Of a stretch of DNA of 64,000 nucleotides, positions 3,801-47,558 are shown in pieces. Source of the stretch: Hyaloraphidium curvatum SAG 235-1 (taxonomy: Eukaryota > Fungi > Monoblepharomycota); the NCBI GenBank assembly GCA_025558095.1, contig JAIVFI010000009.1, positions 62,001 to 126,000 of the forward strand, read 5' to 3'. The notes beneath the pieces are model-generated. The model searched no databases. It was not told the DNA's origin and saw only the letters and a program-made list of their open reading frames with translations. Position numbers and translations under genes: made by a program. How positions within the stretch are numbered: the stretch's first letter is position 1; each line of letters begins with the position of its first letter.

Positions 3801-6800
3801 CGACGGTCGTGCTCGAGCTCGGCGTGAACGTGATCGTGCCGGGCGTCTGAATCGTCGTTGTGTGACCGGAGGGCAGCGTCGGCACCGCAACACTCGTGCT
3901 CGAGCTCCGCGCAACGGTCGCCGTGGGCGGCGCCTCCAAGGTGCTCGTGGAGCCCGGAGAGGTCGTCGTATGGCCCGACGGCAAGGTCGGCACTGCCACG
4001 GTGGTGCTGGAGCTCGGCGTGAAGGTGATCGTCCCGGGAGTCTGCAAAGTAGACGTCTGGCCCGAAGGCAGGGTCGGAACGGCGACGGTCGTGCTCGAGC
4101 TCGGCGTGAACGTGATCGTGCCGGGCGTCTGAATCGTCGTTGTGTGACCGGAGGGCAGCGTCGGCACCGCAACACTCGTGCTCGAGCTCCGCGCAACGGT
4201 CGCCGTGGGCGGCGCCTCCAAGGTGCTGGTGGAGCCCGGAGAGGTCGTCGTATGGCCCGACGGCAAGGTCGGCACTGCCACGGTGGTGCTGGAGCTCGGC
4301 GTGAAGGTGATCGTCCCGGGAGTCTGCAAAGTAGACGTCTGGCCCGAAGGCAGGGTCGGAACGGCGACGGTCGTGCTCGAGCTCGGCGTGAACGTGATCG
4401 TGCCGGGCGTCTGAATCGTCGTTGTGTGACCGGAGGGCAGCGTCGGCACCGCAACACTCGTGCTCGAGCTCCGCGCAACGGTCGCCGTGGGCGGCGCCTC
4501 CAAGGTGCTGGTGGAGCCCGGAGAGGTCGTCGTATGGCCCGACGGCAAGGTCGGCACTGCCACGGTGGTGCTGGAGCTCGGCGTGAAGGTGATCGTCCCG
4601 GGAGTCTGCAAAGTAGACGTCTGGCCCGAAGGCAGGGTCGGAACGGCGACGGTCGTGCTCGAGCTCGGCGTGAAAGTGATCGTGCCGGGCGTCTGAATCG
4701 TCGTTGTGTGACCGGAGGGCAGAGTCGGCACCGCAACACTCGTGCTCGAGCTCCGCGCAACGGTCGCCGTGGGCGGCGCCTCCAGCGTGCTGGTCGAGCC
4801 CCGCGAGGTCGTCGTGTGCCCAGATGGCAACGTCGGCACCGCCACCGTGGTGCTCGAGGTCCCAGTGAAAGTCACCGTCGGCGGCGCGCCCAAGGTGCTG
4901 GTCGACCCGAGAACCTGGCCTGTGGGGATTGCCACGGTCGTGCTCGAGCTGGGGGTGAAGGTGATCGTCCCCGGCGTCTGCACCGTCGAGGTATGCCCCG
5001 ACGGCAGCGTCGGCACCGCGACGGTGCTGCTGGAAGTCTGTGCCTGCGTCGGGGGCGCCTCCAGGGTGGACGTGGATCCGCGCGAGGTCGTCGTGTGCCC
5101 CGAAGGCAACGTCGGCACGGCCACCGTCGTGCTAGAGCTCGGCGTGAAGGTGATCGTCCCGGGCGTCTGAATCGTAGACGTCTGGCCCGAGGGCAGGGTC
5201 GGAATAGCGACCGTGGTGCTCGAACTCGGCGTGAAAGTGATCGTGCCGGGCGTCTGAATCGTCGTCGTGTGCCCGGAAGGCAAGGTCGGCACGGCAACCG
5301 CGGAACTCGTACTCCGCGCCACAGTCGCCGTCGGCGGCGACTTCAGCGTGCTGGTCGACCCCCGCGAGGTCGTCGTGTGGCCAGATGGCAACGTGGGCAC
5401 CGCCACCGTCGTGCTGGAGCTCGGCGTGAAGGTGATCGTCCCCGGGGTCTGCACCGTCGACGTGTGGCCCGAGGGCAGGGTAGGAACGGCGACCGTTGTC
5501 GAGGAGCTCGGGGTCAAAGTGATCGTCCCGGGCGTCTGCAATGTCGTCGTGTGACCAGAGGGTAGAGTAGGCACCACAATGCTCGTGCTCGAGCTCCGCG
5601 GAACGGTCGCCGTCGGCGGCGCCTCAAGCGTGCTGGTCGACCCCCGCGAGGTCGTCGTGTGGCCAGACGGCAACGTGGGCACCGCCACCGTCGTGCTGGA
5701 GCTTGGCGTCAAGGTAATCGTTCCGGGGGTCTGCACGGTGGAGGTGTGGCCCGAGGGCAGGGTGGGAACGGCGACCGTCGTGCTGGAGCTCGGGGTGAAG
5801 GTGACCGTCTCCGGGGCCTGTAGGCTGGTGGTCGTGTGCCCCGAAGGCAACGTCGGAACGGCAACCGTCGTGCTCGAGCTCCGCGAGAAAGTAACGGTCG
5901 CGGGCGCCTCCAGGGTGCTCGACGACCTCACAGAGGTCGTGGTGTGCCCCGACGGGAGGGTTGGCACCGCGACCGTGGTGCTGGAGCTCCTGGTGAAGGT
6001 GACCGTCGGCGGCACCGCGGGGGATGTGTTGCTCTGCCCCGGCGGGACCGTCGGCGTCGGCGGGGCGGTGGTGGTGACGAAGACCAGGCTCGGCGTGTGC
6101 ACGGTCGCCGAGGACGACGTCGCGGTGCGGGAGCGGGTCGAGGTCCCGGGGAGGGAGGGGAAGTCCACGTCGGGCTGCGACTCCGTGGTGAGGGTCACGT
6201 GGATCACGCCGCCGTTCTGGACGACGGTGCCCGGGGGCTGGGTGATCTGGGTGATGGTGTAGTTTCCGGGCCACTGATTCGATTGGGGTGGGGTTCAGGA
6301 GGCGGAAAGCAGCACGTGCGGAGGGGGGACGTTACCAGACGATCAAATGTGTAGGTGCCGTTGGCGTTGGTCCGGACCCGCCTCAGGACCTTATCGCCGT
6401 AGATGTTGGTCCCGTTGATCCGCAGGAAGATCTTCTGCATCGGCTTGTCTCCGGGCACGAAGGTTCCCGTGTTGGTCAGGTCCAGGAACACCACCCCCGT
6501 GATGTTGAGCGGCCCCGGGATGAAGGACGTCGCCGTCCTCGTAACGGTCCGCGTGGTGGTCCGCACCACCGGGACCGTCACGGTTGCGGTCGACCGCGTC
6601 GGGCAGCACGGGGACCAGTAGCTGTGCGATTGCCCGGGGCGGCACGGGGTGCACTGATGCCGGGCAAAGAGGGCGTGGCCATCGCCGGCACCGTCCGGTT
6701 CGCCAGAAAACTCCACGTCTTCGGGCTCGCCCTCGACAAGAGAACGGCGGCGGATGTGGTCCCCGTCCGTGTCGGGCAGCAGGTCCCCGAGCGCGACGTG

Positions 6801-7384
6801 GGGCGCGTCCGCCGCGGGCACCAGGTCCCCGATCGCCACATGCGGTGCGACGGGCTCGGACACCAGGCCGCCGATCTGCAGCGACGACTCGACCTCGACC
6901 TGCAAAGCCCGCCCGACGCCCGGCGTCTTCTTGGCCGCCCTCCGCCGCTTCGTCGATGTGGTCGTGCGCCTCGTCTTTGTGCGGCGCGTCCGCGTGGTCC
7001 GCGTGGAGGTCTGCGCCACCCGCTGGTTCTTCACGCCGACCCTCAGCGGCGCCGATGTCGTCCGCGTGCGCGTGATCGTCGCCGTGACGGTCGTCGGCAC
7101 GCGCGAGTAGACGGTCGCCGGGCGGAAGACGCGCGGGGCGCAGCAGCCTGGAGGGGCGGGTCAGCGGGATCGGCGGGCCCCGGCGATCGCCCACAGTTCT
7201 GCGCGTTGTTGTCGCGGTAGCCGCAGCCCGGACAGCACGTCGGGAACGCTGCTGCCGCGCCGTTGGCGGCCGCCGCGCCCGGCGCCAGGCACACCGCCAG
7301 GAGAGCGCACGCCGCCGCCGCCCACGCCGCCAGCGCCGCCCACGCCGCACGATGGCGCGCTCCCGGCCGTCCTGGGCCGCGCAT
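836..7384 (-). CDS. Giant secreted mucin/adhesin-like protein: signal peptide, Cys-rich segments, SdrD-B-like domain, long Thr/Ser repeats, C-terminal Cys-rich beta-rich (propeller-like) domain; multi-exon
   Basis: ATG at 7384 followed by hydrophobic AAWAALAAWAAAACALLAVCLA. GT-AG introns at 7148-7194 and 6274-6335 restore frame, and further short introns near 3130-3168, 2740-2800 and downstream appear to join ORFs 6204-7100, 3127-6207, 2460-3155, 2491-2769, 1371-2444 and 867-1184. Predicted end SYDGFCLG* (TAG 836-838). The 3' exon boundaries are less certain. Confidence 0.75.
2840..3110 (-). repeat. 27-bp (9-aa, TSSTTSESL) coding tandem repeat
   Basis: Repeated gtcgaggacgtcaagctctcgctg-type units; translation TSSTTSASL TSSTTSESL... 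Confidence 0.9.
3200..4830 (-). repeat. Near-perfect 282-bp (94-aa) coding tandem repeat, about 5.5 copies, continuing as degenerate copies to about 6010
   Basis: Matching antisense ORFs start at 3332, 3614, 3896, 4178, 4460 and 4742 (period 282). Each unit holds three SSST(T/S)VAVPTLPSG(H/Q)T sub-repeats. Confidence 0.95.
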
Positions 7385-8194
7385 AGTGCCGCGGACGCCC
7401 ACGGGACGCGATCGGCGGACGGGAAGGTGAAGAACAAGGTCTGAATCTAGGCTCGCCCCAGCCTCTTGGCCGGCACAATAAAATCACCAGCCACCACCCG
7501 CAACACCGATCTGCACCGATCGCGCTCCGTGGACCGTGATGGAGCCTTCAGTTCCGGCACCGCAATGCTGCGGGCTCCAGCGTAGTCCGTTCGCGGCTCG
7601 GCTGGCGCGGATCCTCGGGCTAGCGGCGCTCCGGGCGTTCGATCCCCCACCTGCGGCCGCCGCACCGCCGCATACGCCCGCCGGCCGACATCCCGCCCGT
7701 GGCGCCTTCCAAGCTGCCGATCCCGGTCCGATGCGGGTCCGCAATGCGTCGGAGGTCGGAGAGCACAGACTCCGACCGCCGATTCCGGGTGCAGCTCCGC
7801 CCGGCGGCGCGGCTATTACGACGCGGCCGCTGTGCGCGCCGACGCGTCCCCCGGACCCACCCCGGTCGGATCGCCACCGGCGCACGCGCGCGGTGTTCCA
7901 TGCCGTGCCGGCCTATTTCACGCCCGATCCTCCCCTCCCGACGCGCGCTCGCCGGTTCGCGGATGCCCGCATTGCACAGCCATAAGCCGGTCCCTGCGCG
8001 CGATCCCAATCTGCGGCTCCTGCCCCCCCGCAAAGGACGATTTCGGGCAACCGATGAATCTGCCTGCGATGCCAATCAGCAGCCAATGCCCAGAGGACAA
8101 CGGAGATCCGCATCGCACAGGGAGCTTGACTAGGTGATAACTTATAGCAACGAATGGGAACAAACAGCAACCGGCGCCCGAACCCGGAGCACTC

Positions 8195-9363
8195 CTACAG
8201 CTTCAGGTCCCCCCTCACGATCAGGTCCTCTACCGTATCCACCACCGTCGCGCCCGCCTTCCTCCACTCCATCCCGAGCTCCTTCTCGGCCCTGGCCGTC
8301 GACAGCCGCCACGGCCCCGCGCCCAGGTGGAACCGGAGAAAGTCCCTGATCCCCGGCTCCATGGTGTACGAAGCGAGCTTCACGAGCGGGGTGGGCAGCC
8401 GGAGGCGGGACCACCTGGCCTTGGGGTAGCGTTCCTTCAGGTACGGGATCATGCGGCGCACGTTCCAGCTCTCCGAAAAGGCGATGTAGCGCCCCGCCGC
8501 GGCGGGGTTCTGCGCGGCCAGCACGTGCAGCAGGGCGACGTCGCGGACGTCCACGATGCCCATGTCCATGTCCATCTGCGTGCGGCGCGGGGGAGCGTCA
8601 GCGCCGGCGATCGTCCGGGCTTGGGAACGGATGCCGCCCACGTACCTGCGGGTAGCTGCCCTTTGCCATGTCGAGGACGGCCTTTCCCGAGTCGCTGACC
8701 GGCCCGCCCACCCTCGGCCCGAGGACAAAGGCAGGGTTGATGCTCGCGCAGCGGATCCCCGGGTTCCTGGCGGCGAAATCGACGACGGCCTTCTCGGCCT
8801 GCACCTTGGACAGGAAGTAGGTCCCCCTTTCGCGCGTCGACTTGGTGTTCCACCTGCCCTCGTCGACGGGGCCGGCGCCGTGGTCCGACGGGCTCTGCCA
8901 CACCGCCGCGACGGAGGAGGTCTGCACGATCACTTTGACCGTGCCCGACTTGCGGCACGCCTCGAGCACGTTTAGCGTGCCCTTGAGCGCGGGCACGAGC
9001 AGCTCGTCGGGGTCCTTGAACGAGGTCGAGACGGGGCTGGCGGTGTGGAAGCACACCGTGACGCCCTCCATGTGCCTGTCGAAGGAGCCGTCGACGAGCA
9101 GGTCCGCCTTGACGAGCTGCAGCCGCTCCGCGGCGCCGGGCAGGGAGGTCAGGTGCTTGGCCTTGGCGGGGTCGCGGACCGAGCCGCGGACCGTATAGCC
9201 GGCGTTCAGGAGGATGGCGACGAGGTGGGAGGCGATGTCTGCCGCGCAAGGGGGGTCAGAAGGGGTGCGGAGGGGCGGAGGAGGCCGAGGGAGACACACA
9301 GCCGGCGGCGCCGGTCACGAAGGCGACCTCGCCCGGGGCGGCGGGTTTCGGCTGCGGGGCCAT
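8195..9363 (-). CDS. NAD(P)-dependent extended SDR (dihydroflavonol/cinnamoyl-CoA reductase, Gre2-like); 2 introns
   Basis: AFVTGAAG|(Y)IASHLV Rossmann motif, VRGSVRDP, FHTASP, TSSVAAV, YFLSK (YxxSK), INPAFVLGP, IVDVRDVALLH. Confidence 0.9.
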
Positions 9364-9911: not shown

Positions 9912-11551
9912 ATGGCGGAATTGGAGCACGCCGAACCCGGCGGCCCCGCCAAAGGCGCGCCGGCAGACCTCCTCTCCTTCCTGACCGGAGCCGAGCTCCT
10001 GTGCCTCTTGCCGGCACCCGTGGCTCCCCCCGCCGGAATCGGCGAAGACGACCCCAAGGACCCCGCGGCCGCCGCCCGGAACGAGCGTCCGCTGACCGCC
10101 GAGGCCGTGCGGGAGGCCGTTTCCGCTGCGGGCGACCCCCTGCTTGATTGGTTGACGCGCACTTCGCTCGCGCTGTCGCCCTACGCGTCGCGGGGCAGGC
10201 TGCGGATCACCGCCAGCCACGTCTACACCGTCTGCGTTATCGTGCCCTTTCTCTGGATAGCGGGGGTCCCGCACGGATTCGGCCGGAGGCAGTTGGCCGC
10301 CACGACCGCGGTGGCCGTCCTGGAATGCCTCGCCTATTCTCTTCTCGCCACCAACATCGGTTGGTTACTAGGGCGCCGAAGCGGACCGAAGTCAGCGCCG
10401 CCGAAGGAGCCGGACCCGGAATACGAGGGCCGGGCAAGGAAGGCATCTTTGCCTGCCGGGTTCTTCTCGGCCCCGACGCTCGACACGTGGGCGGAAGCCT
10501 CCTTTTGGCGCTACCTCATGCTCTGCCAATCAACCACGGACGGACTGTTCCTCGAGCACAGCGACCGGGACTGGTCCGACTGCTGCTGCCCGCGCGGCTC
10601 CTGCGCCGGAGCGATCCCGCGGCGCGCCGGCCTGGCCCGCATCGCGGGCATCTGCAGCTTCCTCGCCACCATCTTCTTCTCGTACGTCACGAGGATGTGG
10701 ACCCCGCTCGTCACGCTCGGCGGGCAGCTCTGGACATCCGCCTGGGCGATCGCCGGTGTACTTTGGATCGTGGTTTGGTGCAACAACCAGATCCCCTCGG
10801 CGTTCGGCGGCGTCGGCACGACGGACAACATCCCGGCAAGGGAGCTTGAACAGCGGCTCGCGCATCGCGCGGTGCGCCGTTCGCTCGAAGCCCTAGTTGG
10901 GCGGCTGAGGGACGAGGTGGCCGGGGCCGAGGGGAAGCATCCGGCGGGCTGCGAGAGCTGGTGCGCGGACCTGGTGCCCCTGCTCGCCAGCCGGTGGAAG
11001 CAGGATGTGGTGCTGCCCCAGTGGGCGGTGATGGCGGGGATCTTTTTTGGGACCGAGGCGATCGCAATCATCATCTTCGTGGTGGGTCGCCTCAAAGCCA
11101 TTGAAGGCGCCTCGATTCCGGATTCTCTGACCCCGACTCGCCGTCGCAGACCACAGGCAACTGCCTCCCCCTCTACACCTTCGCGCAGGTCCTCACCGGC
11201 CTCTTCGTCCTCATGTACGCCCTCCTCAACGCCTCCTTCGGCAACGCCCGCATCACCGGCACCGCCGCCCTCCTCCGCTCGGCCTCCCTCTCCCTCGCCC
11301 GCCTCGAGCTGGCCGTACCCGACCCCCATGCACCCCTGGCGAGACGTATCGCGGCGCACCGCGCGGTGCTCGGGGAGCTGCTCGAGGTGCACGTGGAGGG
11401 CGCGGGGGTGAGGCTGTTTGGGACGCGGGTGACGGCGGGGTTGGCGAGGAAGGTGGTGGCGGCAACGGCGACGGCGCTGTTTGCCGTGTGGACCGTGTTC
11501 CGCGCGCTGGGGGTGGTGCTGACGATGGAGCTCGTTTGCCCGGCGGCGTGA
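9912..11551 (+). CDS. Unknown 7-TM membrane protein, paralogue A (gustatory-receptor/DUF3537-like layout); intron 11082-11149
   Basis: The intron joins ORF 9912 in frame to the ORF ending at 11551. About 7 hydrophobic segments, CCCPRGSCAG, GNCLP, C-terminal VRLFGTRVT...FAVWTVFRALGVVLTMELVC. Confidence 0.8.
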
Positions 11552-14019: not shown

Positions 14020-16235
14020 ATGGCTTCGGAGCCTGCCGCGGGCATGCCGGCGGTGCGCGTGGCGGCGCCCGAGTCGGCCCCCGCGGACGCGGGCGCGCGG
14101 CGGCCGTCCGGGCAGGCCGGGCCATCGGGCGCCGCTGCCGGCCGGGCGCCGCCGCCGCTCGCCAAGGCGTCGTTCGACTTCTGGCTGGCGCTGCTGGGGG
14201 CGGCCGGGCTGCCGCCGCAGCGCGCCATCGACGTCGGCGTGGCGCTCGTCGAGCGCGGCTGGACGCCCGGCAACGCGGACGGGCTGCTGCGGGGCGACGG
14301 GCTCGCGCGCTGCGGGCTCGCCGCCGAGGACGAGCGCGTGCACGTGCAGAAGGCAATCACCGCCTACAGGCTGGACGCCGTCGAGAAGCAGCTCGAGGCG
14401 ATGGGCGTCGCGCACGGCGGGGCCCCCGCCGCCCCGCCCGCGGCCCCGGCTTCCCCGGTGGCCGCCTCCCCCGCCGGCCAGCAGGCACACGCTCCCCAAT
14501 CACAGCCCACCGGGCAGCCGCTGGCCACGCAGGCGGCCGGCCAGCCCCGTGCCGCGCCGCAGCGGGCTGCCACCGTCGGCGCAGCCCCGCCCGCGCCCCC
14601 CGCCCCCACCGTCCCGCCGCCCTCGCGGCCCGCCCGCCAGCGCACCACAACCGGCGGCTCCGTCGGCCAGCCCGCGCTCGCACCCCTGATCCCCGCCAAC
14701 GTCGGCGCCGCGCCCCCCGGGGACCAACCCCAGTCGGCCTCGGCCGTGCCCCCGGTCATGTTCGCCGTGCACAGCAGGAACCGCTCAGGTCCCTCGCCGC
14801 TGCCCAACACGGGGCCCGGGGTCGCGTCGCTGGCGCGCAAGGAGCTCAGCATGTCGAGCAACGTCATGTACGGCACGCCGCACGCCAAGTCCTTCACTAG
14901 GAGCAACTCGGGCGGCGCAGGTGGGTAGCCGGACCGCTTTCCTGTTCCCGTTCGGTCGCCAACTTCCGCTCCCTCGGCGTAGCAGGCGGCGAAGCCGCCG
15001 ACGCGGCGCAGGCCGGCCCCGCCTCGCTCAAAAACATCCAGCAGTCGTCGACCTACGACCCCGCGCAGGCCGCCACCGCCACGCACCCGTCCCAGGCCGG
15101 CCTCCGCCGCGGCTCCTCCTTCACCAACCCGCAAACCGGCGGCGCGCAGAACCCCTCGCCTCCCTCCCTCGCCCGCCAGGCCACCTCGACCCCCACCATC
15201 CCCCGCGTCCCCGCCCCCGGCGAACCGGCACCGGGCACCCCCCTCCGCCTCCTCACCGGCCACACCTCCCCCGTCACCTGCCTCTCGCTGCACCCCACCG
15301 ACCCCGCGCGCCTCTTTTCGGGCTCCAAGGCCCCCGAATCCGCCATCCTCGAGTGGTCCGTGGCCTACTCCCCCCTCGACAAGCCGCAGGAGCAGAACGG
15401 CCGCCTCGCGGCCGCCTACTCGGGCCACACCGACGCCGTCCGCGCCCTGGTGGTGTCCCCGGGGAGCAACAGGCTGTACTCGGCCTCGGACGACAAGACG
15501 GTCCGGGAGTGGGACATCGACCCCCGCCAGCCGGGCACGCGGGCCGCCCTCAGGGTGTTCAAGGGCCACCACGCGCCCGTGGGCTCGCTGTTCCTCGCGG
15601 CGTCGGGGGACCGGCTGTACACGGGGAGCGCGGACAAGACGGTCAGGGAGTGGGATTTGAAGACGGGCAAGGACCTGCGGAGCTTCAAGACGGCCGGGTT
15701 CCTCGACCGCGCGCACCAGGTCGTCCAGGTGGCCCTGTCGGCCGACGGGCGCAGCCTGTTTGCCGCGGTGGGCGACGGCATCGTGCGGTGGGACCTCTGG
15801 AGCGACGACAAGATCGGCAAGACCAAGATGGCCTCCGAGGTGGGCGAGCGCGAGACCACCTCCGGGGCGCAGCCCAACCCCACGGACTTTGCCCTGTCGC
15901 CGGACGGCCGGTACCTCGTCTCGTGCGCGGACGACGGCGCGGCGCGGGAGCACCTCGTGGCCACTGGCGTCACCACGCGGCTCTTCCGCGGGCACTCCGG
16001 GCCGCTGGCGCGGCTGCGGGTGTTCGAGAACAGGATGTTCACCTCGGGCAGCGACGGCACCGTGCGGGAATGGGACATGGCCACGGGGGAGTGCCGCGGG
16101 GTGCTGCGCACGGGTGGGCAGGGGGGGGATCTGGTGCTGGTGGTGTTTGGGAGCAGGAGGGAGGGGGGGGTGGTGGGGGAGGTGAGGAGGGTGTGGGCGG
16201 GGGTGGGGGAGGGGGTGAGGGAGTTTGCGGTGTGA
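14020..16235 (+). CDS. WD40-repeat protein with N-terminal SAM-like helical region and Pro/Ala-rich linker; intron 14921-14982
   Basis: GHTSPVTCL, GHTDAVRAL...SASDDKTVREWD, GHHAPV...GSADKTVREWD, GHSGPL...GSDGTVREWD. Confidence 0.85.
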
Positions 16236-22222: not shown

Positions 22223-23768
22223 ATGCGGGCCTATGTCTTCGGGGCCGTCGCCGCCGGGGCGCTGCTGGCGGCTCTGGCCGGCAGTGCGTCCGCCACGCCG
22301 GTGCCGCGCGCCGACGACCGGTTCCCCGGCGCCGTGTTCGTCGACGTGCCGTCCGAGCCGTGGCCGGCGTTCCCGGGGCTGCGGCCGCAGACGGCGCCGG
22401 CGACCGCCGGGCAGACGGGCGGCGGCGGCGTCGCGCCCAACGGCCTCAACCTGCCGTGGCAGCGCACGCCGCCGGCGTCGATCCCGTGCGACCCGCCGAG
22501 CCCCGCCTCGGCGCCGTTCTGCCCGCGCGGCCGCGTGTCCAACGCGCCGTACTGCTCCGCCTTCACCGTCGCCCGCGCCGGCGACACGTGCGCCTCGATC
22601 GCCCGCGCGTTCGGCCTGGACGGCCCCACGCTGGCGTCGCTCAACGCCCCCGCGCTGCAGACCCAGCCCGGCTGCCCCGACCTGCGCGTCGGCATGCGCG
22701 TGTGCATCTACGGCTGGCAGGGCTGGATCCCAGACGACCCGACCCTGAACGCCGGCCAGCGCTACCCGACCGTCGCCGGCGCGAGCTACCAGTACTGCTC
22801 CCGCCCCGGCGTCATGGCCCTGACCTTTGACGACGGCCCGCACATCTGTGGGTCCCATCGCCGGCCGCTCCACTTTGGTGGATTGCTGACACCGCCTCGA
22901 TCCAGTCACGCCGCGGCTGCTCGACTACCTCCGCGCGCAGAACATAAAGGCCACCTTCTTCATCAACGGCTGGAACAAGAACTGCATCTACAACGCCACC
23001 TTTGCCAACATCGTCCGCCGCGCCTTCCGCGAGGGCCACCAGATCGCCTCGCACTCGTGGTCGCACCCGTCGGTGCGCGGCATCTATGACCAGTACGGCG
23101 CGGCGGCCGTCCGCGTCGAGCTGGACCGCGTCGAGGCGGCCATCGAGAAGATCATCGGGTACAGGCCGCGGTACTTCCGCCCGCCGTACGGCGAGGGCGG
23201 GCACGACCGCGTGCTGGCGCCCATCTTCCGGGAGCGCGGCTACGTCGTGTCCATGTGGACGTTTGCCACCATCGACGCAAACATGTGGGTCCCGTGCCGG
23301 ATGCTCCTCATCATCGCGTCCCTTGCTGACCCTCCTTCCGCCCCTTGCAGCGACGACGGCCTCGCCGCGCCCGCCTCGCGCTTCCCCGACAACGTCATCA
23401 ACGCCGCCACCCGCCGCGCCTTCTGGGTCGGCTACTACGGCTCCACCAACTACCGCCCCGGCGTCACCTCGCACAGCGTGCTCATGCACGACCCCCTGCA
23501 GCGCACCGTGCGCGACCTCGCACCCTGGGTGGTCGCGCAGGGCCGCCGCCTCGGGTACCGGTTCGTCACCTTTGGCGAGTGCCAGGGGGACACGGACTGG
23601 AGGCGGTGGTACAAGCCCCGCAGGACGGGGGTCAACTACACGCGGCTGATGACGCCCGACGCGAGCTGGGTGTGCCCCGAGGACGGACCCGCGCCGAGGT
23701 GCCTGCCGTGGCAGCCGCGGTGCAGCGCGAGGCCCAACGCGACGGCGATACCGAGGCCGTGGCGGTGA
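22223..23768 (+). CDS. Secreted LysM + CE4 polysaccharide (chitin) deacetylase; 2 introns (about 22848-22905 and 23285-23350)
   Basis: Signal peptide; LysM CSAFTVARAGDTCASIARAFGL...LNAP...C.DLRVGMRVCI; NodB motifs TFDDGP, ATFF, HSWSHP, RPPYG, LMHD. Confidence 0.92.
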
Positions 23769-30477: not shown

Positions 30478-32133
30478 TCACGCCGTCAGCCGGCACGCCA
30501 AGTCCATGGTCACGCCGACGCCGAGAGCCCTGAGGACAGTCCACAATCCGACGAGGATCGAGAACCCCGCAACCACGATACCCCTGAGAGTCGCAAACGT
30601 CATGGGCACACCAAAGAACCCGGCCTTGAACGCGTCGAGATCCGTGAATGAGAGGAGTAGGTCCCGGTGCGACAGGATCGTGTGCCGGAGCAGCGCGCGG
30701 GAAGCGGGGAGGCGGCCGGCCAGCACGGAGAGCTCTTGTGCGCAGGCGCGGTACTGCGCCGTCGCGTGGCGCGACTGCAGGTTCTTGTACGCGTACGACA
30801 GGGCGAGGTAGATCATTACATGCAGGGTGATGGCAAAGTCGCCAATCAGCAACGCAGGCAGGCAGTTTCCGACGGCGATGCTGACGACGGCTGCGACGGA
30901 GTGGGTGCACAGGGCGCCCACGCCGAGGAGGCGCAGTGGCGCGTTCGAGTCGAGGCTGCTGCGCCAGTCGGCGAGAAGCTGCCCGTGCAGGCCGATGTAG
31001 GGTTCCTTAGGGATACAGGATGCGAGGTTGGCGTCATTAATGTTTGTGTCGCCGTCTGTTGGGTGATCCGCAGCGCAAGTTAGGCGGTCTACGAGGTTGC
31101 GCAAGCATATGGCCACTGCACGGTGCCGTAAGCGGAGTTCCAGAGCGTAGACACTTGGATTCGGGGGCCCTCCGGGAAAGTACGTGTTTATCTCGGTGGC
31201 CACAAACAAGAGAACCATCACTGGTACTAAAAGCGCCGTTGCCACCGTTGAAGTCCAGACAAAGGGTCCGAGGGTGACAGCAGCAGACCAAAATGTCGCG
31301 ACGATCAAGGTGAAGTTGGTCAAGCACATGTGCACGATGAGGAAAGCCAGCATCGAGAGTCTGCTCTGCTTGACAAAAGGTCCGGTGCAATCGGGACACG
31401 AGCAGAGTTTCTCGGTCGCGTTGTCGTCAAGCAAACGCGATGAATCCGGGCGACGGCCGGCAGCAATGCTGCTCTTCATATCACCCTCCAGAAGCTGAAG
31501 GTATCGAACCAGGCCCGAGTATCCCTGGGCATCGAGGTGATCGAGGCTTTCAGGCGACCGTATGGGGCCCATGTGTTCTGGATCATCGTCCCTAGCAGCT
31601 TTGCGGCGATCTGCAGCCGCAGCGCGTCTGGCACGTTCCGTTGGAGGCGCAAAGAGACCGACCACGTAGAGCAAGTCCCAGCCCAGTTTGTGGAGCACGA
31701 AGACGACCTGACCAGCGGCGAGATTCCGGATCCCGAAGGTCCCGGGCCCCAAAACCCAAAGAAATACGTACAGAGCCTGCGAACACGCCTCCACCAGGGC
31801 CCCAATCCACGGCTTTGAGCCGAAGTTCTTGTGCAGGACCATCTCGAGTGCCAACATTGAGCCCATGGGGTTTGCCGCGGAATCCAGCGCGGCCCGGAAC
31901 GCGTCCAGTGTGAGCGGACGAGAAGCACGCCCCGCAGCAGCCGCGGCGTTGGCACCCGTCGGCCACAGCCACGCCGGGACGTCTTCGGGCAGCGGCGCCG
32001 CGTTGCCCCCGAGCGAAGGAAACAGCGCAAGTTGTTCAGCCGGCGAAAACGGGTACGGCCGCGCGCCGTCCGGTGCCTCCGCGCTATTCGCCACGTCGGG
32101 CTGATCCATATTGCTCATTGTCGTCCGCGACAT
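30478..32133 (-). CDS. Unknown 7-TM membrane protein, paralogue B; intronless
   Basis: 551-aa ORF with about 7 TM segments, LCSCPDCTG, GNCLP, KAGFFGVPMT...LWTVLRALGVGVTMDLAC. Confidence 0.8.
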   Translation of the reverse strand: MSRTTMSNMDQPDVANSAEAPDGARPYPFSPAEQLALFPSLGGNAAPLPEDVPAWLWPTGANAAAAAGRASRPLTLDAFRAALDSAANPMGSMLALEMVLHKNFGSKPWIGALVEACSQALYVFLWVLGPGTFGIRNLAAGQVVFVLHKLGWDLLYVVGLFAPPTERARRAAAADRRKAARDDDPEHMGPIRSPESLDHLDAQGYSGLVRYLQLLEGDMKSSIAAGRRPDSSRLLDDNATEKLCSCPDCTGPFVKQSRLSMLAFLIVHMCLTNFTLIVATFWSAAVTLGPFVWTSTVATALLVPVMVLLFVATEINTYFPGGPPNPSVYALELRLRHRAVAICLRNLVDRLTCAADHPTDGDTNINDANLASCIPKEPYIGLHGQLLADWRSSLDSNAPLRLLGVGALCTHSVAAVVSIAVGNCLPALLIGDFAITLHVMIYLALSYAYKNLQSRHATAQYRACAQELSVLAGRLPASRALLRHTILSHRDLLLSFTDLDAFKAGFFGVPMTFATLRGIVVAGFSILVGLWTVLRALGVGVTMDLACRLTA

Positions 32134-34020: not shown

Positions 34021-35769
34021 ATGAAGGACGCCGAGGATTCCGAGGACGCGGCGCCGGGCGACTTTTCCCTTCTCCCCGAACGCATTGTCGGCCGCCCCGA
34101 CGCGGACTACGCGGCGGCAATCCGCAACCGGCTCGGGCCACCGGCCGTGGACCCGCGGCACAGGTCGAGGGCGGACCCGCAGTGCGCGCGGGAGGCGCGG
34201 CTGCCCCTGCCCACGGCGAAGGACAGGCCGTTGCTGGGCCGGTGGCGGCCACCGCTGTCGGCGGCCCAGGCGGCGGACATTTTCGCGGCAAATGGGCTGC
34301 CTGCGCTCGCGGGCCTGTGCCGTTTTCTGCTCGCGGCTTCCGTGGCGGAGAAAACGGTGGCTGCGTTCGTCGTGGGGACCGCGACGATGCTGGCCACCGT
34401 CCCGGCGTTGCTCGCTGCGATCGGCTTGTCGCGCCCACCCGGCCCTGTCGGCCCTTTTGCCACGGCATGCGCCGGCATCCTCGTAGGGTACTACGTGTCT
34501 ATCGTCTCGTTCGCGCTTCCGCACCACCGTGTTCTCGCCCCGCGGCGGTTCAAGTCGCCCGCCGATCCGCAACTGGCGGGCACGCCGGCGGTAATCGCGT
34601 GGTATTGGGCTCGCGCTATTACCGACAGGGCCGCATTGCTGCGGCACTGCCCCCCCAAGGACGACTACGCGGGGATGGAGGAGCTATTCGTACCCGAGGA
34701 GGGCCCCAAACTCGCGGACGCCGCCGCCGTCCGGTCCTCGGAATGCCCATGCCCACAGTGCTTCGGGCTCTTTGCTGGGAATGGCTGGCTGTTAGTTGGC
34801 TGGTTCATTCTGCACCACTTCGTTGTCGTGTCTGGCATTTTGGTTGCGATGCTATGCCTTTCCTTCTGGGACCTTTGGGGAAGCCCGGGAAGCCCTCTGC
34901 TCTCACGGCCGTGGGTCGCGGCGTGTTTCGCCATCCATGTCGTGGGCATCGTTGCTACCAATTTCGTTGCGGCCGCCAGGGAAAACCATGTCATGGTTCT
35001 CGCCCAGGCCCAGATCATTCGGAGGGTGCAGATCCGTGCATCGCGCGCCGCTTGCGACGCGTTTGTTCGCGAGTGTGCGGAACGCGTACGGATGTCCATT
35101 ACTGACCGCGGAACCAGCCCCGGCTTTGGAGAGCTGGTCCCTCAACCCAAACCAGCGACGGAAGCATGCAACGGCCTCAAGGCTACTAATGAGGAGCAGC
35201 TTGGCGGACCTTCACCGGATTGGGCGCTCCCGCAGCTCTATGCACGCGTGGCCTCCGATGTCAAGCAGTACGGGCGCTCACGGACCCTCTATACTGTGTA
35301 CCTACACTTGCCCCTTGGAACTGCCGGAATCTCCCTGCTTGCCGCCTTGCTATGCTCCTTCTCCTTCGGCGGCTCCTGCTTCCCCGCATGGGGCTTTGCC
35401 ATCCCCTTCCTCGGTGTCTTCGTCGCCGCGGGCAACCTCGCGGACATGGCTGTCATCAACGCTGCGTCGGCTGCGGTCGCCGATGTGTACCGCGAGGCCG
35501 GCGATGCCGTCGCCTCCCTCGCCGCGGACCTGCCTTCCGGCCCCGGATCCGCCGTGCTTGCTGCCGACCTGGAACGACACCGCATGGAGCTGGATCGCAT
35601 CGCGGATGCGTTGCTGCGGGGCACTGCCAAGGCCAAGTTCCTCGGTTTCGCCGTCACGGGGGCGTCGCTAATCAACATCGCCGTAGCGGTGATCACCGTC
35701 GGCGCGACACTGTTCCGGGCTTTCGGGCTGAGGCTCCAGCTGGGGACGTACTGCACCCCAGTCGAATAG
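34021..35769 (+). CDS. Unknown 7-TM membrane protein, paralogue C; intronless
   Basis: About 7 TM segments, ECPCPQCFG, GSCFP, KAKFLGFAVT...ATLFRAFGLRLQLGTYC. Confidence 0.78.
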   Translation: MKDAEDSEDAAPGDFSLLPERIVGRPDADYAAAIRNRLGPPAVDPRHRSRADPQCAREARLPLPTAKDRPLLGRWRPPLSAAQAADIFAANGLPALAGLCRFLLAASVAEKTVAAFVVGTATMLATVPALLAAIGLSRPPGPVGPFATACAGILVGYYVSIVSFALPHHRVLAPRRFKSPADPQLAGTPAVIAWYWARAITDRAALLRHCPPKDDYAGMEELFVPEEGPKLADAAAVRSSECPCPQCFGLFAGNGWLLVGWFILHHFVVVSGILVAMLCLSFWDLWGSPGSPLLSRPWVAACFAIHVVGIVATNFVAAARENHVMVLAQAQIIRRVQIRASRAACDAFVRECAERVRMSITDRGTSPGFGELVPQPKPATEACNGLKATNEEQLGGPSPDWALPQLYARVASDVKQYGRSRTLYTVYLHLPLGTAGISLLAALLCSFSFGGSCFPAWGFAIPFLGVFVAAGNLADMAVINAASAAVADVYREAGDAVASLAADLPSGPGSAVLAADLERHRMELDRIADALLRGTAKAKFLGFAVTGASLINIAVAVITVGATLFRAFGLRLQLGTYCTPVE

Positions 35770-44029: not shown

Positions 44030-46063
44030 CTAGATCGCTATCCTCCGCGGCAAAAACGCCCGCACCACCATCTCCGCCTCCCCCAGATCCACATCCGGCT
44101 CCGCGTTCGCGGCGCTCTTGTGCCGGTGGTCGTACGCCCAGAACCGCAGCAGCAGATCCTGCCCCGCCCTCTCCTCCGCCGTCAGCACGTGGTCCAGGTC
44201 GCCGTTGAGCAGCGGGGAGAAGGAGTGGTACCGCAGGACGTACGAGACCTCGGGGGGAAGATGCGGGGCGAGGCGGAGGTGCGCGACGTCGTCGTGGCCG
44301 AACTGCGTCTCGATGGCGGCCAGCCCGCGGCCGGCGAGGGAAGCGAGTGTTTCGCGGGATGCGGGCCGGCCGTCGACGAACAGGGCGTCGTTGGTGCACA
44401 CCACGTTTGCCGGGTCCTCCCCGTCCAGCAGCGCCACCTTGCCGACGTCGTGGTACAGCGCCAGGAACAGCAGCCGCGGGTCGGTCACGCCGTCCTTTTG
44501 CATGGCTTCGAACACCTGCAGCCCGTGGACGTACCCCGACAGGCCCATGAGGGAGTTGTCCGAGTCGTCCGTGACGTTCTTGAGCGCGAGGAAGGCGTCC
44601 CACGGGTCGACGTCGGGGCCGAGGGCGAGCCGCGAGGACCATTTCGCGCGCAGGGCGGCGATGGAGGCGGGGGTCTGCAGCCGGTGGCGGTCGTAGATCT
44701 CGGCGGCGCGGGCGGCGAATGCCTGCTGCTCCGCGGGGGGCAGGCGCGGGGGGTTGCGCCGGGCGGCCTGTTCGATGACTTCGCGCTGCGGGAGGTCCGC
44801 AGGGTTGGATTGGGCGAGCACGAGGGCGGCGCGGAAGGCAGCGGGGTGGGTGGTGGTGTTTGCGGGGGCCGGTGCCGGGCCGCCGGAGCGGGCGAGGCGC
44901 AGGGCATGGGCGGCGCGGTGGCCCGGGGCGGCGGCCGCGGCCCAGTAGTTCGTTGATTTCTCGGCTCCGCCGGGGCGCAGTTTGTCGAAGGAGCGCGTGT
45001 CCGTGTGCACGATGGGGGCCGCGTGGAGCACCGCGCACGGGTCCACGGGGCGGTCCAACGCAACATTGTGGTTTTCCACGTACGAGGGCAGGGTCTTTCG
45101 GGGCACGTCGGTGTTGAGGCCCATCGGGCCGCCCGTGGCGTTGGCCGCCAAGGCGGCGACGAACTCGGGGTTGGGCACGCGGCGCGAGCGCACGGGGAAT
45201 GCGGCGGCGCGGGGCAGCGGCTCGCGCTCCAGCACCGTGCGGTCCAGGTAGTCCGCCGCCGCCGAGCAGAAGACATGGTCCATCTTCCTGGCCGACGCCA
45301 GCGCCGCCTCGGGGACCGGGGAGAGCACGGTGCGGTGGCAGTGCGCCCAGAACCCGGCGGTGAAGAGGGGCGCCATGACCTCGACGATGAAAGCGGGGCC
45401 CACCTCCCATGTGGCAGTGCGGCGCTCGTCGGCCCACAGGTGCTGGAAGGGCGTCTGCTGGCGCTCCGCGGCGGGGTGGCGCGCGATTGACGGCTGCGAG
45501 AGCGGCGCCCGCGAAAGCAGTGCCGAGGCCAGCATCGCCGAGAGGTTGAAGTTGTCGCGCCCAAAGGCCATGTCCGCGTCCAGGCACCAGACAAAATCGA
45601 ACGACGAGGCCAGCTGCGGCGTCACCGCGGCCTTCCAGAAGGCGGGTTTGCCGACGGGCAGCTCGTACGTGCCGGCGACGAGCTCCTCCACGCGGGCCTC
45701 GTGCACTGCGATCTCGAGCGCCTTTGCGGCGGCGGGGCCCTCGAACGAGTTGAGCGCGAACCGCACCGCCGTGCCCCTGTACGACGCCATCTGGGCCACG
45801 AAGGCGCGGCGCTCGGCGTGCGGCACGGCGGACGCGATGAGCACGCGGATCGGCGGGTCCATCGGCGGGGCGGGAGGGTTCGTGGCGGGGCCGGGCAGCA
45901 CGTCGGGCAAGCGGGGCGACGTTCCCCCCGGGACGGCCCCGCCGAGCAGCAGCACCGAAGCCGCCAGAAGGCACGCCGCCGCGATGGCCCGCCCGGCCGG
46001 CGGCCGCGGGGAGCCCATCGGGCCCTCGCAGCGCGCAGGGGAAGGCCAAGGGATTGGACCCAT
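44030..46063 (-). CDS. Fusion protein: signal anchor + DUF707-like (GT-A-type) domain + myo-inositol oxygenase-like di-iron HD domain; start at 46063 or 46018; intronless
   Basis: FDFVWCLDADM...SQPSI...VEVMAPLFT (DUF707-like); DDSD...VHGLQ...YHDVGK...FGHDD...RYHSF...AYDHRHKS (MIOX-like). Confidence 0.8.
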   Translation of the reverse strand: MGPIPWPSPARCEGPMGSPRPPAGRAIAAACLLAASVLLLGGAVPGGTSPRLPDVLPGPATNPPAPPMDPPIRVLIASAVPHAERRAFVAQMASYRGTAVRFALNSFEGPAAAKALEIAVHEARVEELVAGTYELPVGKPAFWKAAVTPQLASSFDFVWCLDADMAFGRDNFNLSAMLASALLSRAPLSQPSIARHPAAERQQTPFQHLWADERRTATWEVGPAFIVEVMAPLFTAGFWAHCHRTVLSPVPEAALASARKMDHVFCSAAADYLDRTVLEREPLPRAAAFPVRSRRVPNPEFVAALAANATGGPMGLNTDVPRKTLPSYVENHNVALDRPVDPCAVLHAAPIVHTDTRSFDKLRPGGAEKSTNYWAAAAAPGHRAAHALRLARSGGPAPAPANTTTHPAAFRAALVLAQSNPADLPQREVIEQAARRNPPRLPPAEQQAFAARAAEIYDRHRLQTPASIAALRAKWSSRLALGPDVDPWDAFLALKNVTDDSDNSLMGLSGYVHGLQVFEAMQKDGVTDPRLLFLALYHDVGKVALLDGEDPANVVCTNDALFVDGRPASRETLASLAGRGLAAIETQFGHDDVAHLRLAPHLPPEVSYVLRYHSFSPLLNGDLDHVLTAEERAGQDLLLRFWAYDHRHKSAANAEPDVDLGEAEMVVRAFLPRRIAI

Positions 46064-46097
46064 TGCCGCCCGCCTACCCGCCAATCCCCGGGAGGCC

Positions 46098-47558
46098 ATG
46101 GGACCGGCCATCGTGATCCTGGGGGCGGGCCCGGCGGGCCTCGGTGCCGCCTCCGCGCTCTCTGCCCTCGGCGACGCCGCCCCTCCCTGGCTGCTCCTCG
46201 AAACCTCGGACTCCCCCGGCGGCCTCGCTTCCACCGACGCGACCCCCGAGGGCTTCTTCTTCGACCGGGGCGGCCACGTGATCTTCTCGCACTGCCGCGA
46301 ATTTGACGCCGCGCTGGACGCCGCCCTGCCGCGGGGGGAGGACTGGCGGTGGCACGCGCGGGCGTCGGCGGTCCGGTGCAATGGCAGCTGGGTGCCGTAT
46401 CCGTTCCAGAACAACGTGGCGGCGCTGCCGGAAAAGGAGAGGGAGGAGTGCATTGCCGGGATGGTGGAGGCGCTCGAGGCGCGGCGGGAGCGGGAGAAGG
46501 CGGGCAAGGCGGGGCCCCCAGCCGATTTCGACGAGCTGATCCTGCGCACCATGGGTCGCGGCATCGCGGACCTCTTCATGCGCCCGTACAACGCCAAGGT
46601 GTGGACCGTGCCCCCCTCCGCCATGTCGTGCTCCTGGATCGGCGAGCGCGTGGCGGTCCCCGACCTCGCGGGCGCGGTGGCCGCCGCGAGGGAGGGCAGG
46701 CTGGATCCGGGGTGGGGACCCAATGCGCGGTTCAGGTTCCCAGCGAGGGGGGGCACGGGGGCCATTTGGAAGGGGGTGGCGGGGAAGTTGGACCAGAGGA
46801 GGGTGAGGTACGGGTGCCGCTTGGTGCGCGTTGACACCGAGGCCCGGAAACTGGTGCTCGCCGACGGCACTTCGCTCGGGTACCAACGGCTCATCAGCAC
46901 GGTACCGCTCGACACCCTGGTTGGGATGCTCCACCCCCCGCGCCCGGACCTCTCCGCCGCCTCCTCCCGCCTGGTGCGCACGACCGTGCACGTCGTCGGC
47001 CTGGGCATCCGCGGCCGCCCGCCGCCGGAGATCGCCGCCGCATGCTGGCTCTACTTCCCCGACCCGCAGGTGCCCTTCTACCGCGCCACCGTGTTCTCCA
47101 ACTACTCGGAGCACAATGTGCCGCCTGAGGAGACCTTCCTCCCGACCCTGATGGTCGCCGACGGCTCACCACCCGACCCGGAACCGCGCCCGGGACCGTA
47201 CTGGTCCCTCATGCTCGAGATCCCCTCCCTCCCCTCCTCCCCACCCCCGGCGGACCTCATCCCTCGCGCCGTGTCCGGCGCCATCCACACCGGCATCCTC
47301 CCCCCCTCTTCCTCCCTGGTATCCCTGCACTCCCTCGCCCTCCCGCACGGGTACCCCGTCCCCACCCTCTCCCGCGACTCGGCTCTGGAAACCGTGATCC
47401 CCGCGCTTGCAGATTTTGGGATCGCGGGGGTCGGCAGGTTCGGGGGGTGGAGATACGAGCTGGGGAACCAGGACCATGCGTTCGGGGAGGGGTGGGCGGC
47501 GGCGCGGGGGGCGGTGGAGGGGATGAGGCGGGAGGCGGGGCCGATGGAGGCCGGGTGA
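46098..47558 (+). CDS. ugmA: UDP-galactopyranose mutase, eukaryotic type (FAD); intronless
   Basis: ILGAGPAGLGAA, GGLAST, FDRGGHVIFSH, VPYPFQNN, MRPYNAKVW, WGPNARFRFPARGGTG, PFYRATVFSNYS, GRFGGWRYELGNQDH. Confidence 0.93.
   Translation: MGPAIVILGAGPAGLGAASALSALGDAAPPWLLLETSDSPGGLASTDATPEGFFFDRGGHVIFSHCREFDAALDAALPRGEDWRWHARASAVRCNGSWVPYPFQNNVAALPEKEREECIAGMVEALEARREREKAGKAGPPADFDELILRTMGRGIADLFMRPYNAKVWTVPPSAMSCSWIGERVAVPDLAGAVAAAREGRLDPGWGPNARFRFPARGGTGAIWKGVAGKLDQRRVRYGCRLVRVDTEARKLVLADGTSLGYQRLISTVPLDTLVGMLHPPRPDLSAASSRLVRTTVHVVGLGIRGRPPPEIAAACWLYFPDPQVPFYRATVFSNYSEHNVPPEETFLPTLMVADGSPPDPEPRPGPYWSLMLEIPSLPSSPPPADLIPRAVSGAIHTGILPPSSSLVSLHSLALPHGYPVPTLSRDSALETVIPALADFGIAGVGRFGGWRYELGNQDHAFGEGWAAARGAVEGMRREAGPMEAG

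Follow-up and report, generated by a model that had tools for sequence, protein, structure and literature searches.

A predicted DUF707-like glycosyltransferase fused to a MIOX-family di-iron domain in Hyaloraphidium curvatum, encoded head-to-head with a UDP-galactopyranose mutase

Background

What would a di-iron oxygenase domain of the myo-inositol oxygenase (MIOX) family be doing behind a glycosyltransferase on the same polypeptide? The question is raised by a minus-strand open reading frame (ORF) at positions 44030-46063 of a 64,000-nucleotide stretch of contig JAIVFI010000009.1 from Hyaloraphidium curvatum SAG 235-1, the whole of which is referred to here as the window. An earlier note on this DNA had read the ORF as a hydrophobic anchor, a DUF707-like glycosyltransferase and a MIOX-type di-iron domain on one chain, and this architecture, with the anchor taken as anchor or signal, is upheld by Pfam, profile comparison, predicted folds, collinear orthologues and an RNA-like contig. 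The gene lies head-to-head with a gene for UDP-galactopyranose mutase (UGM), and we consider it reasonably probable, from sequence and gene neighbourhood, that its product is a glycosyltransferase-oxygenase pair working on galactofuranose-containing glycans.

Among HD-domain oxygenases only MIOX, PhnZ and TmpB have established reactions (PMC8177086). Plant members of DUF707 have been found as Golgi-proteome proteins and have been proposed to be glycosyltransferases (PMC3522684; PMC5217351).

Results and discussion

A single-exon gene spans both domains

Collinear homologues, a transcriptome-like sequencing run and a contig of that run crossing both domains identify the ORF as one genuine, expressed, single-exon gene (Table 1). 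Translation from the ATG at 46063 gives the full-length product, and a second ATG at 46018 (Met16) is a possible alternative start. The minus-strand frame is free of stop codons from 47008 to 44030, a 992-aa ORF when counted from its first ATG; the 315 further codons (46064-47008, minus strand) run across the plus-strand UGM gene and are an antisense shadow of it rather than coding sequence, the frame staying open because both frames share GC-rich third codon positions. GC content at third codon positions (GC3) stays at 0.84-0.98 in all 150-nt blocks of 46063-44030, and the interdomain linker is no exception (0.84-0.96). The open frame, coding-type GC3 throughout and collinear orthologues thus agree with the single uninterrupted ORF originally described.

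Expression evidence comes from X1, the sole public run that contains the window stretch, which we took to be RNA from its transcriptome-like behaviour. It comprises 98,341 contigs (26.7 Mb in total), which terminate in Illumina adapter sequence at gene borders. One contig of 1969 nt covers 44043-46010 with no joint and no mismatch and bridges both domains, the outcome that a single transcript predicts. Depth is 130 over the fusion gene, 130-245 over the fusion and UGM genes, and 0-4 outside them. A 3' intron, an idea raised by the contig ending 11 nt early, was ruled out by the C-terminal motif LPxxIx(F/L/I), which can be aligned in every orthologue right up to the C-terminus.

In the public protein collection the protein is represented only by a 172-aa NCBI entry (P0002), 100 % identical to aa 506-677 and beginning at the internal Met506 (window 44033-44548, minus strand). 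The X1 contig extends 1.4 kb upstream beyond this gene model, which suggests that the public model is truncated to the end of the MIOX-like domain, so that the glycosyltransferase domain was missed and the fusion hidden. The genome itself (G000; 31.9 Mb in 55 contigs, about 67 % GC) is eukaryotic. Searches of it found no match to the chlorophyll a/b-binding family, no paralogue of either domain and no canonical or other MIOX-family gene.

Table 1 Features of the fusion gene and its divergent neighbour, in window coordinates
Feature	Position	Strand	Evidence
Fusion-protein coding sequence, single exon, 677 aa plus stop	44030..46063	-	ORF and translation, GC3, orthologue, RNA-like contig
Hydrophobic N-terminal segment, aa 26-46, Arg before it	45926..45988	-	Sequence, homologues
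Predicted GT-A fold glycosyltransferase domain, DUF707 kind, aa 72-370	44954..45850	-	AlphaFold2 (AF2), Foldseek, VIA-align, homologues, hhalign
Ala/Pro/Arg-rich linker, aa 371-444, poorly conserved, coding	44732..44953	-	Alignment A1, GC3
Predicted MIOX-family HD-domain di-iron domain, aa 445-677	44033..44731	-	Pfam, conserved columns, AF2, PDB matches
Spacer of 43 bp between divergent start codons	46064..46106	.	Coordinates
Eukaryotic-type UGM, 483 aa, divergent partner	46107..47558	+	phmmer

The C-terminal domain retains a complete di-iron site

Homologues were sought exhaustively among 1.84 billion representative proteins and aligned in three sets: seven fusion proteins (A1), 56 members of the MIOX-like clade (A2) and 38 homologues of the glycosyltransferase domain (A3). 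Pfam MIOX (PF05153) matches the window protein at 43.5 bits (cut-off 25, E 3.8e-11) and its orthologue P0001 at 60.1 bits, over profile positions 9-247 of 249. All six iron ligands are present in the order H..HD..H..H..D (H513, H538, D539, H590, H613 and D645), corresponding to H98, H123, D124, H194, H220 and D253 of mouse MIOX. Conserved with them are K542, the Lys of HDxGK, and D499, D502, S614 and K649, which are K127, D85, D88, S221 and K257 in mouse numbering. These residues, which include every ligand, the Lys and the DDSD aspartates picked out in the earlier note, are invariant in the seven fusion proteins and either invariant or at least 90 % conserved in the 56 clade members.

By sequence search human and mouse MIOX are the only relatives of solved structure (phmmer E 0.0016), with 19-22 % identity. 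The AF2 model of the domain is of high confidence (pLDDT 96.1, pTM 0.92), and in Foldseek its three top ranks are taken by MIOX (mouse 2huo and human 2ibn; E 5e-9, TM 0.76), followed by PhnZ and TmpB (TM 0.38-0.43). Together, the model and the conserved residues point to a MIOX-family HD domain with a complete di-iron site that looks catalytic.

The domain nevertheless departs from MIOX in its substrate region. HMMER places a seven-residue gap opposite MIOX 'pqwavvg', so that the surroundings of the VVGDT loop are absent from the window protein, and it pairs the window residues 'NVVC' with MIOX 'FPVGC'. The proposal that the loop is altered to VVCTN is therefore not the best alignment, since VVC falls opposite 'PVGC' and the loop is missing rather than changed. 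Asp142 of that loop is an inositol-binding residue in MIOX; opposite it stand D551 in the window protein and E, D, K, K or no aligned residue in the other fusion proteins. A further difference lies in architecture: MIOX is a free cytosolic enzyme, whereas the window domain follows a signal or anchor and a glycosyltransferase on one chain.

PhnZ and TmpB, mixed-valent di-iron oxygenases that cleave C-P bonds, share the ligand set and, like the clade of the window protein, work beside a partner enzyme encoded next door (PMC8177086). Their partners are 2-oxoglutarate hydroxylases, in contrast to the glycosyltransferases and UGM of the window clade, their structural similarity is far lower than that of MIOX, and there are no phosphonate genes near the window gene.

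The N-terminal half resembles a luminal glycosyltransferase

The protein begins with a hydrophobic segment, as do the full-length homologues P0001, P0004 and P0007. From its sequence this could be either a signal peptide or a type II signal anchor; the segment described in the earlier note is thus there, and its nature as an anchor is one of two options. In either case the protein would enter the secretory pathway through it, and the conserved cysteines C266 and C343 of the following domain, together with this segment, fit a luminal protein.

The domain that follows was modelled by AF2 with a pLDDT of 81, including a low-confidence, disordered insertion of about 50 residues (aa ~281-331). Foldseek returned 192 PDB matches at E <= 0.001, and nearly all of those listed are GT-A glycosyltransferases. 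VIA-align superposes about 200 residues on RmlT, TarS, GalNAc-T2, LH3 and PcManGT (Z 14-15, root-mean-square deviation ~3 Å). The conserved residues are N105, K139, W143, W159, P191, C266 and C343, plus the motif D162-A-D164. N105 and D164 are invariant in the 38 homologues, and D162, C266 and C343 are conserved in at least 90 % of them. The DxD expected between 45250 and 45700 is this motif, at nt 45572-45580.

DUF707 proteins (PF05212; plants and a few bacteria) have a homologous GT-A-like domain with a DxD; the window protein differs from them in its insertion, in its C-terminal oxygenase domain and in being too divergent for the Pfam model. The assignment to DUF707 is accordingly drawn from relatives. 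The homologues P0003, P0004, P0007 and P0010 align to aa 72-270 and match PF05212 above its cut-off of 24.1 bits, and hhalign of the A3 profile against the DUF707 protein of a bacterial locus (L014) gave a probability of 97.5 % (E 5e-12). The DUF707-like domain of the earlier note therefore stands through homologues, hhalign and the predicted GT-A fold, and not through a direct Pfam match. On the predicted fold and the intact DxD, the N-terminal domain appears to be a metal-dependent GT-A glycosyltransferase of the DUF707 kind that looks catalytic.

A sparse clade repeatedly tied to glycosyltransferases

Collinear fusion homologues were found in another eukaryote, in bdelloid rotifers and in uncultured protists. 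P0001, from the first of these, has 669 aa and 45 % identity and is collinear over aa 49-676; P0003, P0004, P0005 and P0007 likewise match in both domains. The fusion proteins of Rotaria sit in databases under the automatic name 'Inositol oxygenase'. A full-text literature search on DUF707, MIOX-like or MIOX-domain proteins, HD-domain oxygenases and MIOX with UGM turned up no account of either the fusion or a link to UGM. The remark that no such protein had been described thus holds for papers, while the architecture itself was already present in databases. Leads for the window protein in the protein atlas were sub-threshold only (0.78-0.80).

Pfam MIOX scores across the clade are weak (36-84 bits). 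A tree of the MIOX domain separates group 1, with all fusion proteins and the named eukaryotes (Rotaria, Perkinsus olseni and dinoflagellates), from group 2, with the known bacterial members. The oxygenase domain of group 1 is fused to three kinds of N-terminal domain: DUF707-like, Nucleotid_trans (GT77-like; P0063) and DUF3431 (P0102). The MIOX-like domain is thus part of a separate clade of sparse distribution, with recurrent ties to glycosyltransferases.

The DUF707-like domain is also found in other combinations. In P0125 it is fused to a GT2-like domain (24.6 bits, just below the 27.5 cut-off) and in P0139 to a GT29 sialyltransferase-like domain, which suggests multi-transferase enzymes built on this uncharacterised domain.

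Gene neighbourhoods point to glycan synthesis

The divergent neighbour of the fusion gene matches the UGM of Aspergillus fumigatus (3uka) with a phmmer E of 2e-150 (residues 2-472 against 9-474) and is the only UGM in the genome. RNA-like contigs of the fusion and UGM genes end at 46010 and 46071, and the spacer between the start codons presumably serves both genes as a bidirectional promoter region. L004, the contig encoding P0001, has 53 % GC and clearly belongs to another organism; the fusion and UGM genes are again head-to-head there, and no other gene on it has a counterpart beside the pair in the window.

Bacteria carry the same parts as separate genes. In a betaproteobacterial metagenome-assembled genome (MAG; L014) a GLF-type UGM (-), a MIOX-like gene (+) and a DUF707 gene (-) adjoin one another. 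An Acidimicrobiales MAG (L015) has a MIOX-like gene, a UGM-like flavoprotein and a GT2 gene in series on the same strand, and eukaryotic UGMs are the only PDB relatives of this flavoprotein (E 3e-11). In a Solibacteraceae MAG (L011) a PMT_2 GT-C gene begins 3 bp after the MIOX-like gene, and on an uncultured JGI metagenome contig an AftB_C gene lies nearby. UGM adjacency in three independent settings and with two types of UGM argues for function over shared descent. A GLF-type UGM is present in three of the five bacterial genomes that carry the clade, with a UGM-like gene in a fourth, compared with 4 of 14 controls, a sample too small to weigh much. Among 401 sampled genomes from the class of the L014 bacterium, the clade was found in the L014 genome alone, together with one distant canonical-type MIOX. 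The excerpted paper on the Acinetobacter baumannii outer-core locus lists both Glf and DUF707 ORFs and does not show them in one locus.

At L015 (5001-7997, plus strand, 75 % GC) the 744-aa ORF at 5763-7997 does not correspond to one gene. Only its last 320 codons (7035-7997) are the GT2 gene; the 424 codons before them lie out of frame over the genuine UGM-like gene (5656-7032).

About nine bacterial members begin with a twin-arginine-like RRxFL and a hydrophobic stretch, which the L014 and L015 proteins do not have; these leaders suggest that the enzyme is located in the same compartment as the transferase it partners. In an uncultured, AT-rich eukaryote (L006) the DUF707-MIOX fusion at 2218-4032 (-) diverges from a SKN1/KRE6 gene (P0175, 4184-5839, +), an arrangement seen in three samples.

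Proposed function

The best reading of these observations, as far as sequence and neighbourhood can indicate, is that the protein acts in the secretory pathway and there combines sugar transfer with an oxidation. UGM, itself cytosolic, would supply UDP-galactofuranose (UDP-Galf), a donor suggested by the adjacency of the UGM gene alone, and the glycosyltransferase domain would transfer a sugar, most likely galactofuranose (Galf), to a cell-surface glycoconjugate. The di-iron domain would use O2 to act on a vicinal diol in the donor or the product, oxidising or cleaving it through MIOX/PhnZ-type hydrogen abstraction beside an iron-bound hydroxyl, and the two steps could follow one another in either order. 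The exocyclic C5-C6 diol of galactofuranose is an obvious candidate target because it sets this sugar apart and resembles the vicinal diol cleaved by MIOX. A bolder version, which we regard as improbable though the least so of the specific chemistries considered here, is that the clade represents a fourth reaction class of HD-domain mixed-valent di-iron oxygenases, one that tailors glycans or sugar nucleotides by oxidative C5-C6 cleavage of Galf, before transfer on UDP-Galf or afterwards; this would yield a five-carbon furanosyl aldehyde or uronate residue.

Fusion of the two domains would allow an intermediate to pass from one active site to the other, an arrangement comparable to that of lysyl hydroxylase 3 (LH3/PLOD3). 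LH3, which is luminal in the endoplasmic reticulum, likewise combines GT-A domains and an Fe/O2 oxygenase on one secretory chain, and the N-terminal domain of the window protein finds some of its best structural matches in the GT-A-type domains of LH3. The LH3 oxygenase, a mononuclear Fe(II)/2-oxoglutarate enzyme, has an unrelated fold and acts on collagen lysine, the same substrate as its glycosyltransferase, so the resemblance appears to be one of logic and not of descent.

Several observations weigh against a role in galactofuranose metabolism or against the domain and gene assignments beneath it. The link to UGM was seen in three of about 15 independent loci with usable flanks, and two bacterial loci, one in a Pseudomonadales MAG (L017) and one a second copy in the Solibacteraceae MAG (L031), show no sugar genes nearby. 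The P0007-type fusion adjoins SKN1/KRE6, which serves beta-1,6-glucan synthesis, instead of UGM; for this reason we take glycan synthesis as the common denominator of the clade, with UGM a frequent and not universal partner. Land-plant DUF707 proteins occur in organisms that are not known to make galactofuranose, so transfer of this sugar is not an inherent property of DUF707. The secretory lumen is oxidising and would be an unusual place for a mixed-valent di-iron enzyme. Pfam DUF707 (PF05212) has no match on the window protein at E <= 1, and the best match in the whole genome lies elsewhere and is below the cut-off. Lastly, the X1 contig reaches neither candidate start codon, stopping 8 nt from Met16, and lacks the last 11 nt up to the end of the stop codon, and the RNA nature of the run is a guess.

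Alternative explanations

One alternative is that the C-terminal domain is an ordinary myo-inositol oxygenase, which would convert free inositol to D-glucuronate or open the inositol of a lipid headgroup, with the glycosyltransferase using or decorating the product. The Pfam MIOX match, MIOX as the best structural match, the conserved counterparts of MIOX D85, D88, K127, S221 and K257, and a genome without any other MIOX-family gene all agree with this. Even so we judge it unlikely, as identity to MIOX is low (phmmer E 0.0016), the seven-residue VVGDT segment with Asp142 is absent, the family does not conserve the aligned Asp, and a luminal location does not match the cytosolic inositol pool. 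Gene context speaks in the same direction. A distant canonical-type MIOX in a low-GC bacterial genome (G285; L032, 1478-5149) lies beside glucuronate isomerase (UxaC) and a mannitol-dehydrogenase-family gene, with no glycosyltransferases; this is the expected context for catabolism of inositol to glucuronate and a useful negative control for the clade, whose partners are UGM and glycosyltransferases. The inositol or cyclitol substrate put forward in the earlier note is for these reasons not supported for a clade with only about 20 % identity to MIOX.

Equally unlikely in our estimate is that the HD domain is a dinuclear phosphohydrolase, acting on released UDP or on a sugar-phosphate or polyprenyl-phosphate link and so pulling transfer forward. 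HD-domain proteins are mostly phosphohydrolases, including some dinuclear ones with similar ligands (PMC8177086), a glycosyltransferase frees a nucleoside diphosphate, which would make fusion to a phosphatase sensible, and relatives have weak Pfam HD and HDOD matches. The significant structural matches, however, are MIOX, PhnZ and TmpB only, all of them oxygenases, whereas HD phosphohydrolases match only at E > 0.1 and TM < 0.3; the family-specific Pfam match is to MIOX, and conservation extends to the MIOX residues that bind sugar hydroxyls.

Slightly less likely again is that one of the two domains is non-catalytic, the DUF707-like part being a sugar-nucleotide- or glycan-binding module or the MIOX-like part a metal-binding structural appendage. 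In the literature searched no DUF707 activity has been demonstrated in any organism, and the segment of LH3 that matches the glycosyltransferase domain in VIA-align is residues 293-523, its non-catalytic accessory GT-like domain. Against this, 38 sequences conserve the DxD and some ten further positions and 56 conserve the six ligands and the Lys, and independent fusions to three glycosyltransferase-type domains argue for two coupled activities.

That the gene model is an artefact, two genes or a missed intron or frameshift read through by chance, is very improbable: GC-rich genomes do yield long spurious ORFs, as in the extension of the frame over UGM, and the public collection has only the 172-aa form, but the linker has coding-like GC3, seven proteins from unrelated sources have the collinear two-domain layout and a jointless RNA-like contig spans 44043-46010.

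Other genes in the window

A family of hydrophobic proteins is represented in the window by three copies that have diverged to 27-29 % identity, at 30493-31131 (-), 11156-11539 (+) and 35338-35757 (+). The family has no Pfam match and shows a conserved G-x-C-x-P and a Cys near the C-terminus. A homologue is found on L004 (12097-12768, -), directly downstream of the fusion orthologue and convergent with it, and the family may be linked to the fusion gene. Further clear genes in the window include those for a polysaccharide deacetylase (22890-23765, +), a fragment of an NAD-dependent epimerase/dehydratase (8601-9314, -) and a WD40 protein (14901-16232, +); the first two also concern sugar metabolism.

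Conclusions

The family and fold described here were known, while the architecture, location and partners are new and the substrate is probably new. New findings are the head-to-head pairing of the fusion and UGM genes, the bacterial neighbourhoods of UGM, MIOX-like and DUF707 genes, and the additional clade fusions with GT77-like and DUF3431 domains. They define a further HD-domain clade with an intact di-iron site, whose partners hint at the substrate, galactofuranose or another glycan diol, and they suggest a partner activity for the uncharacterised DUF707 family. Since bacteria keep the same parts as neighbouring genes, an undescribed O2-dependent step in the assembly of cell-surface sugars is indicated. 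Galactofuranose, which is not known from mammals, is important at the cell surface of many fungi, protists and bacteria, and a new enzyme acting on it would therefore be of interest to glycobiologists. If the bolder version, oxidative cleavage of galactofuranose, is correct, these proteins would represent a new O2-dependent route to modified furanoses, extending from bacteria, with separate genes, to eukaryotes, with a Golgi glycosyltransferase-oxygenase fusion.

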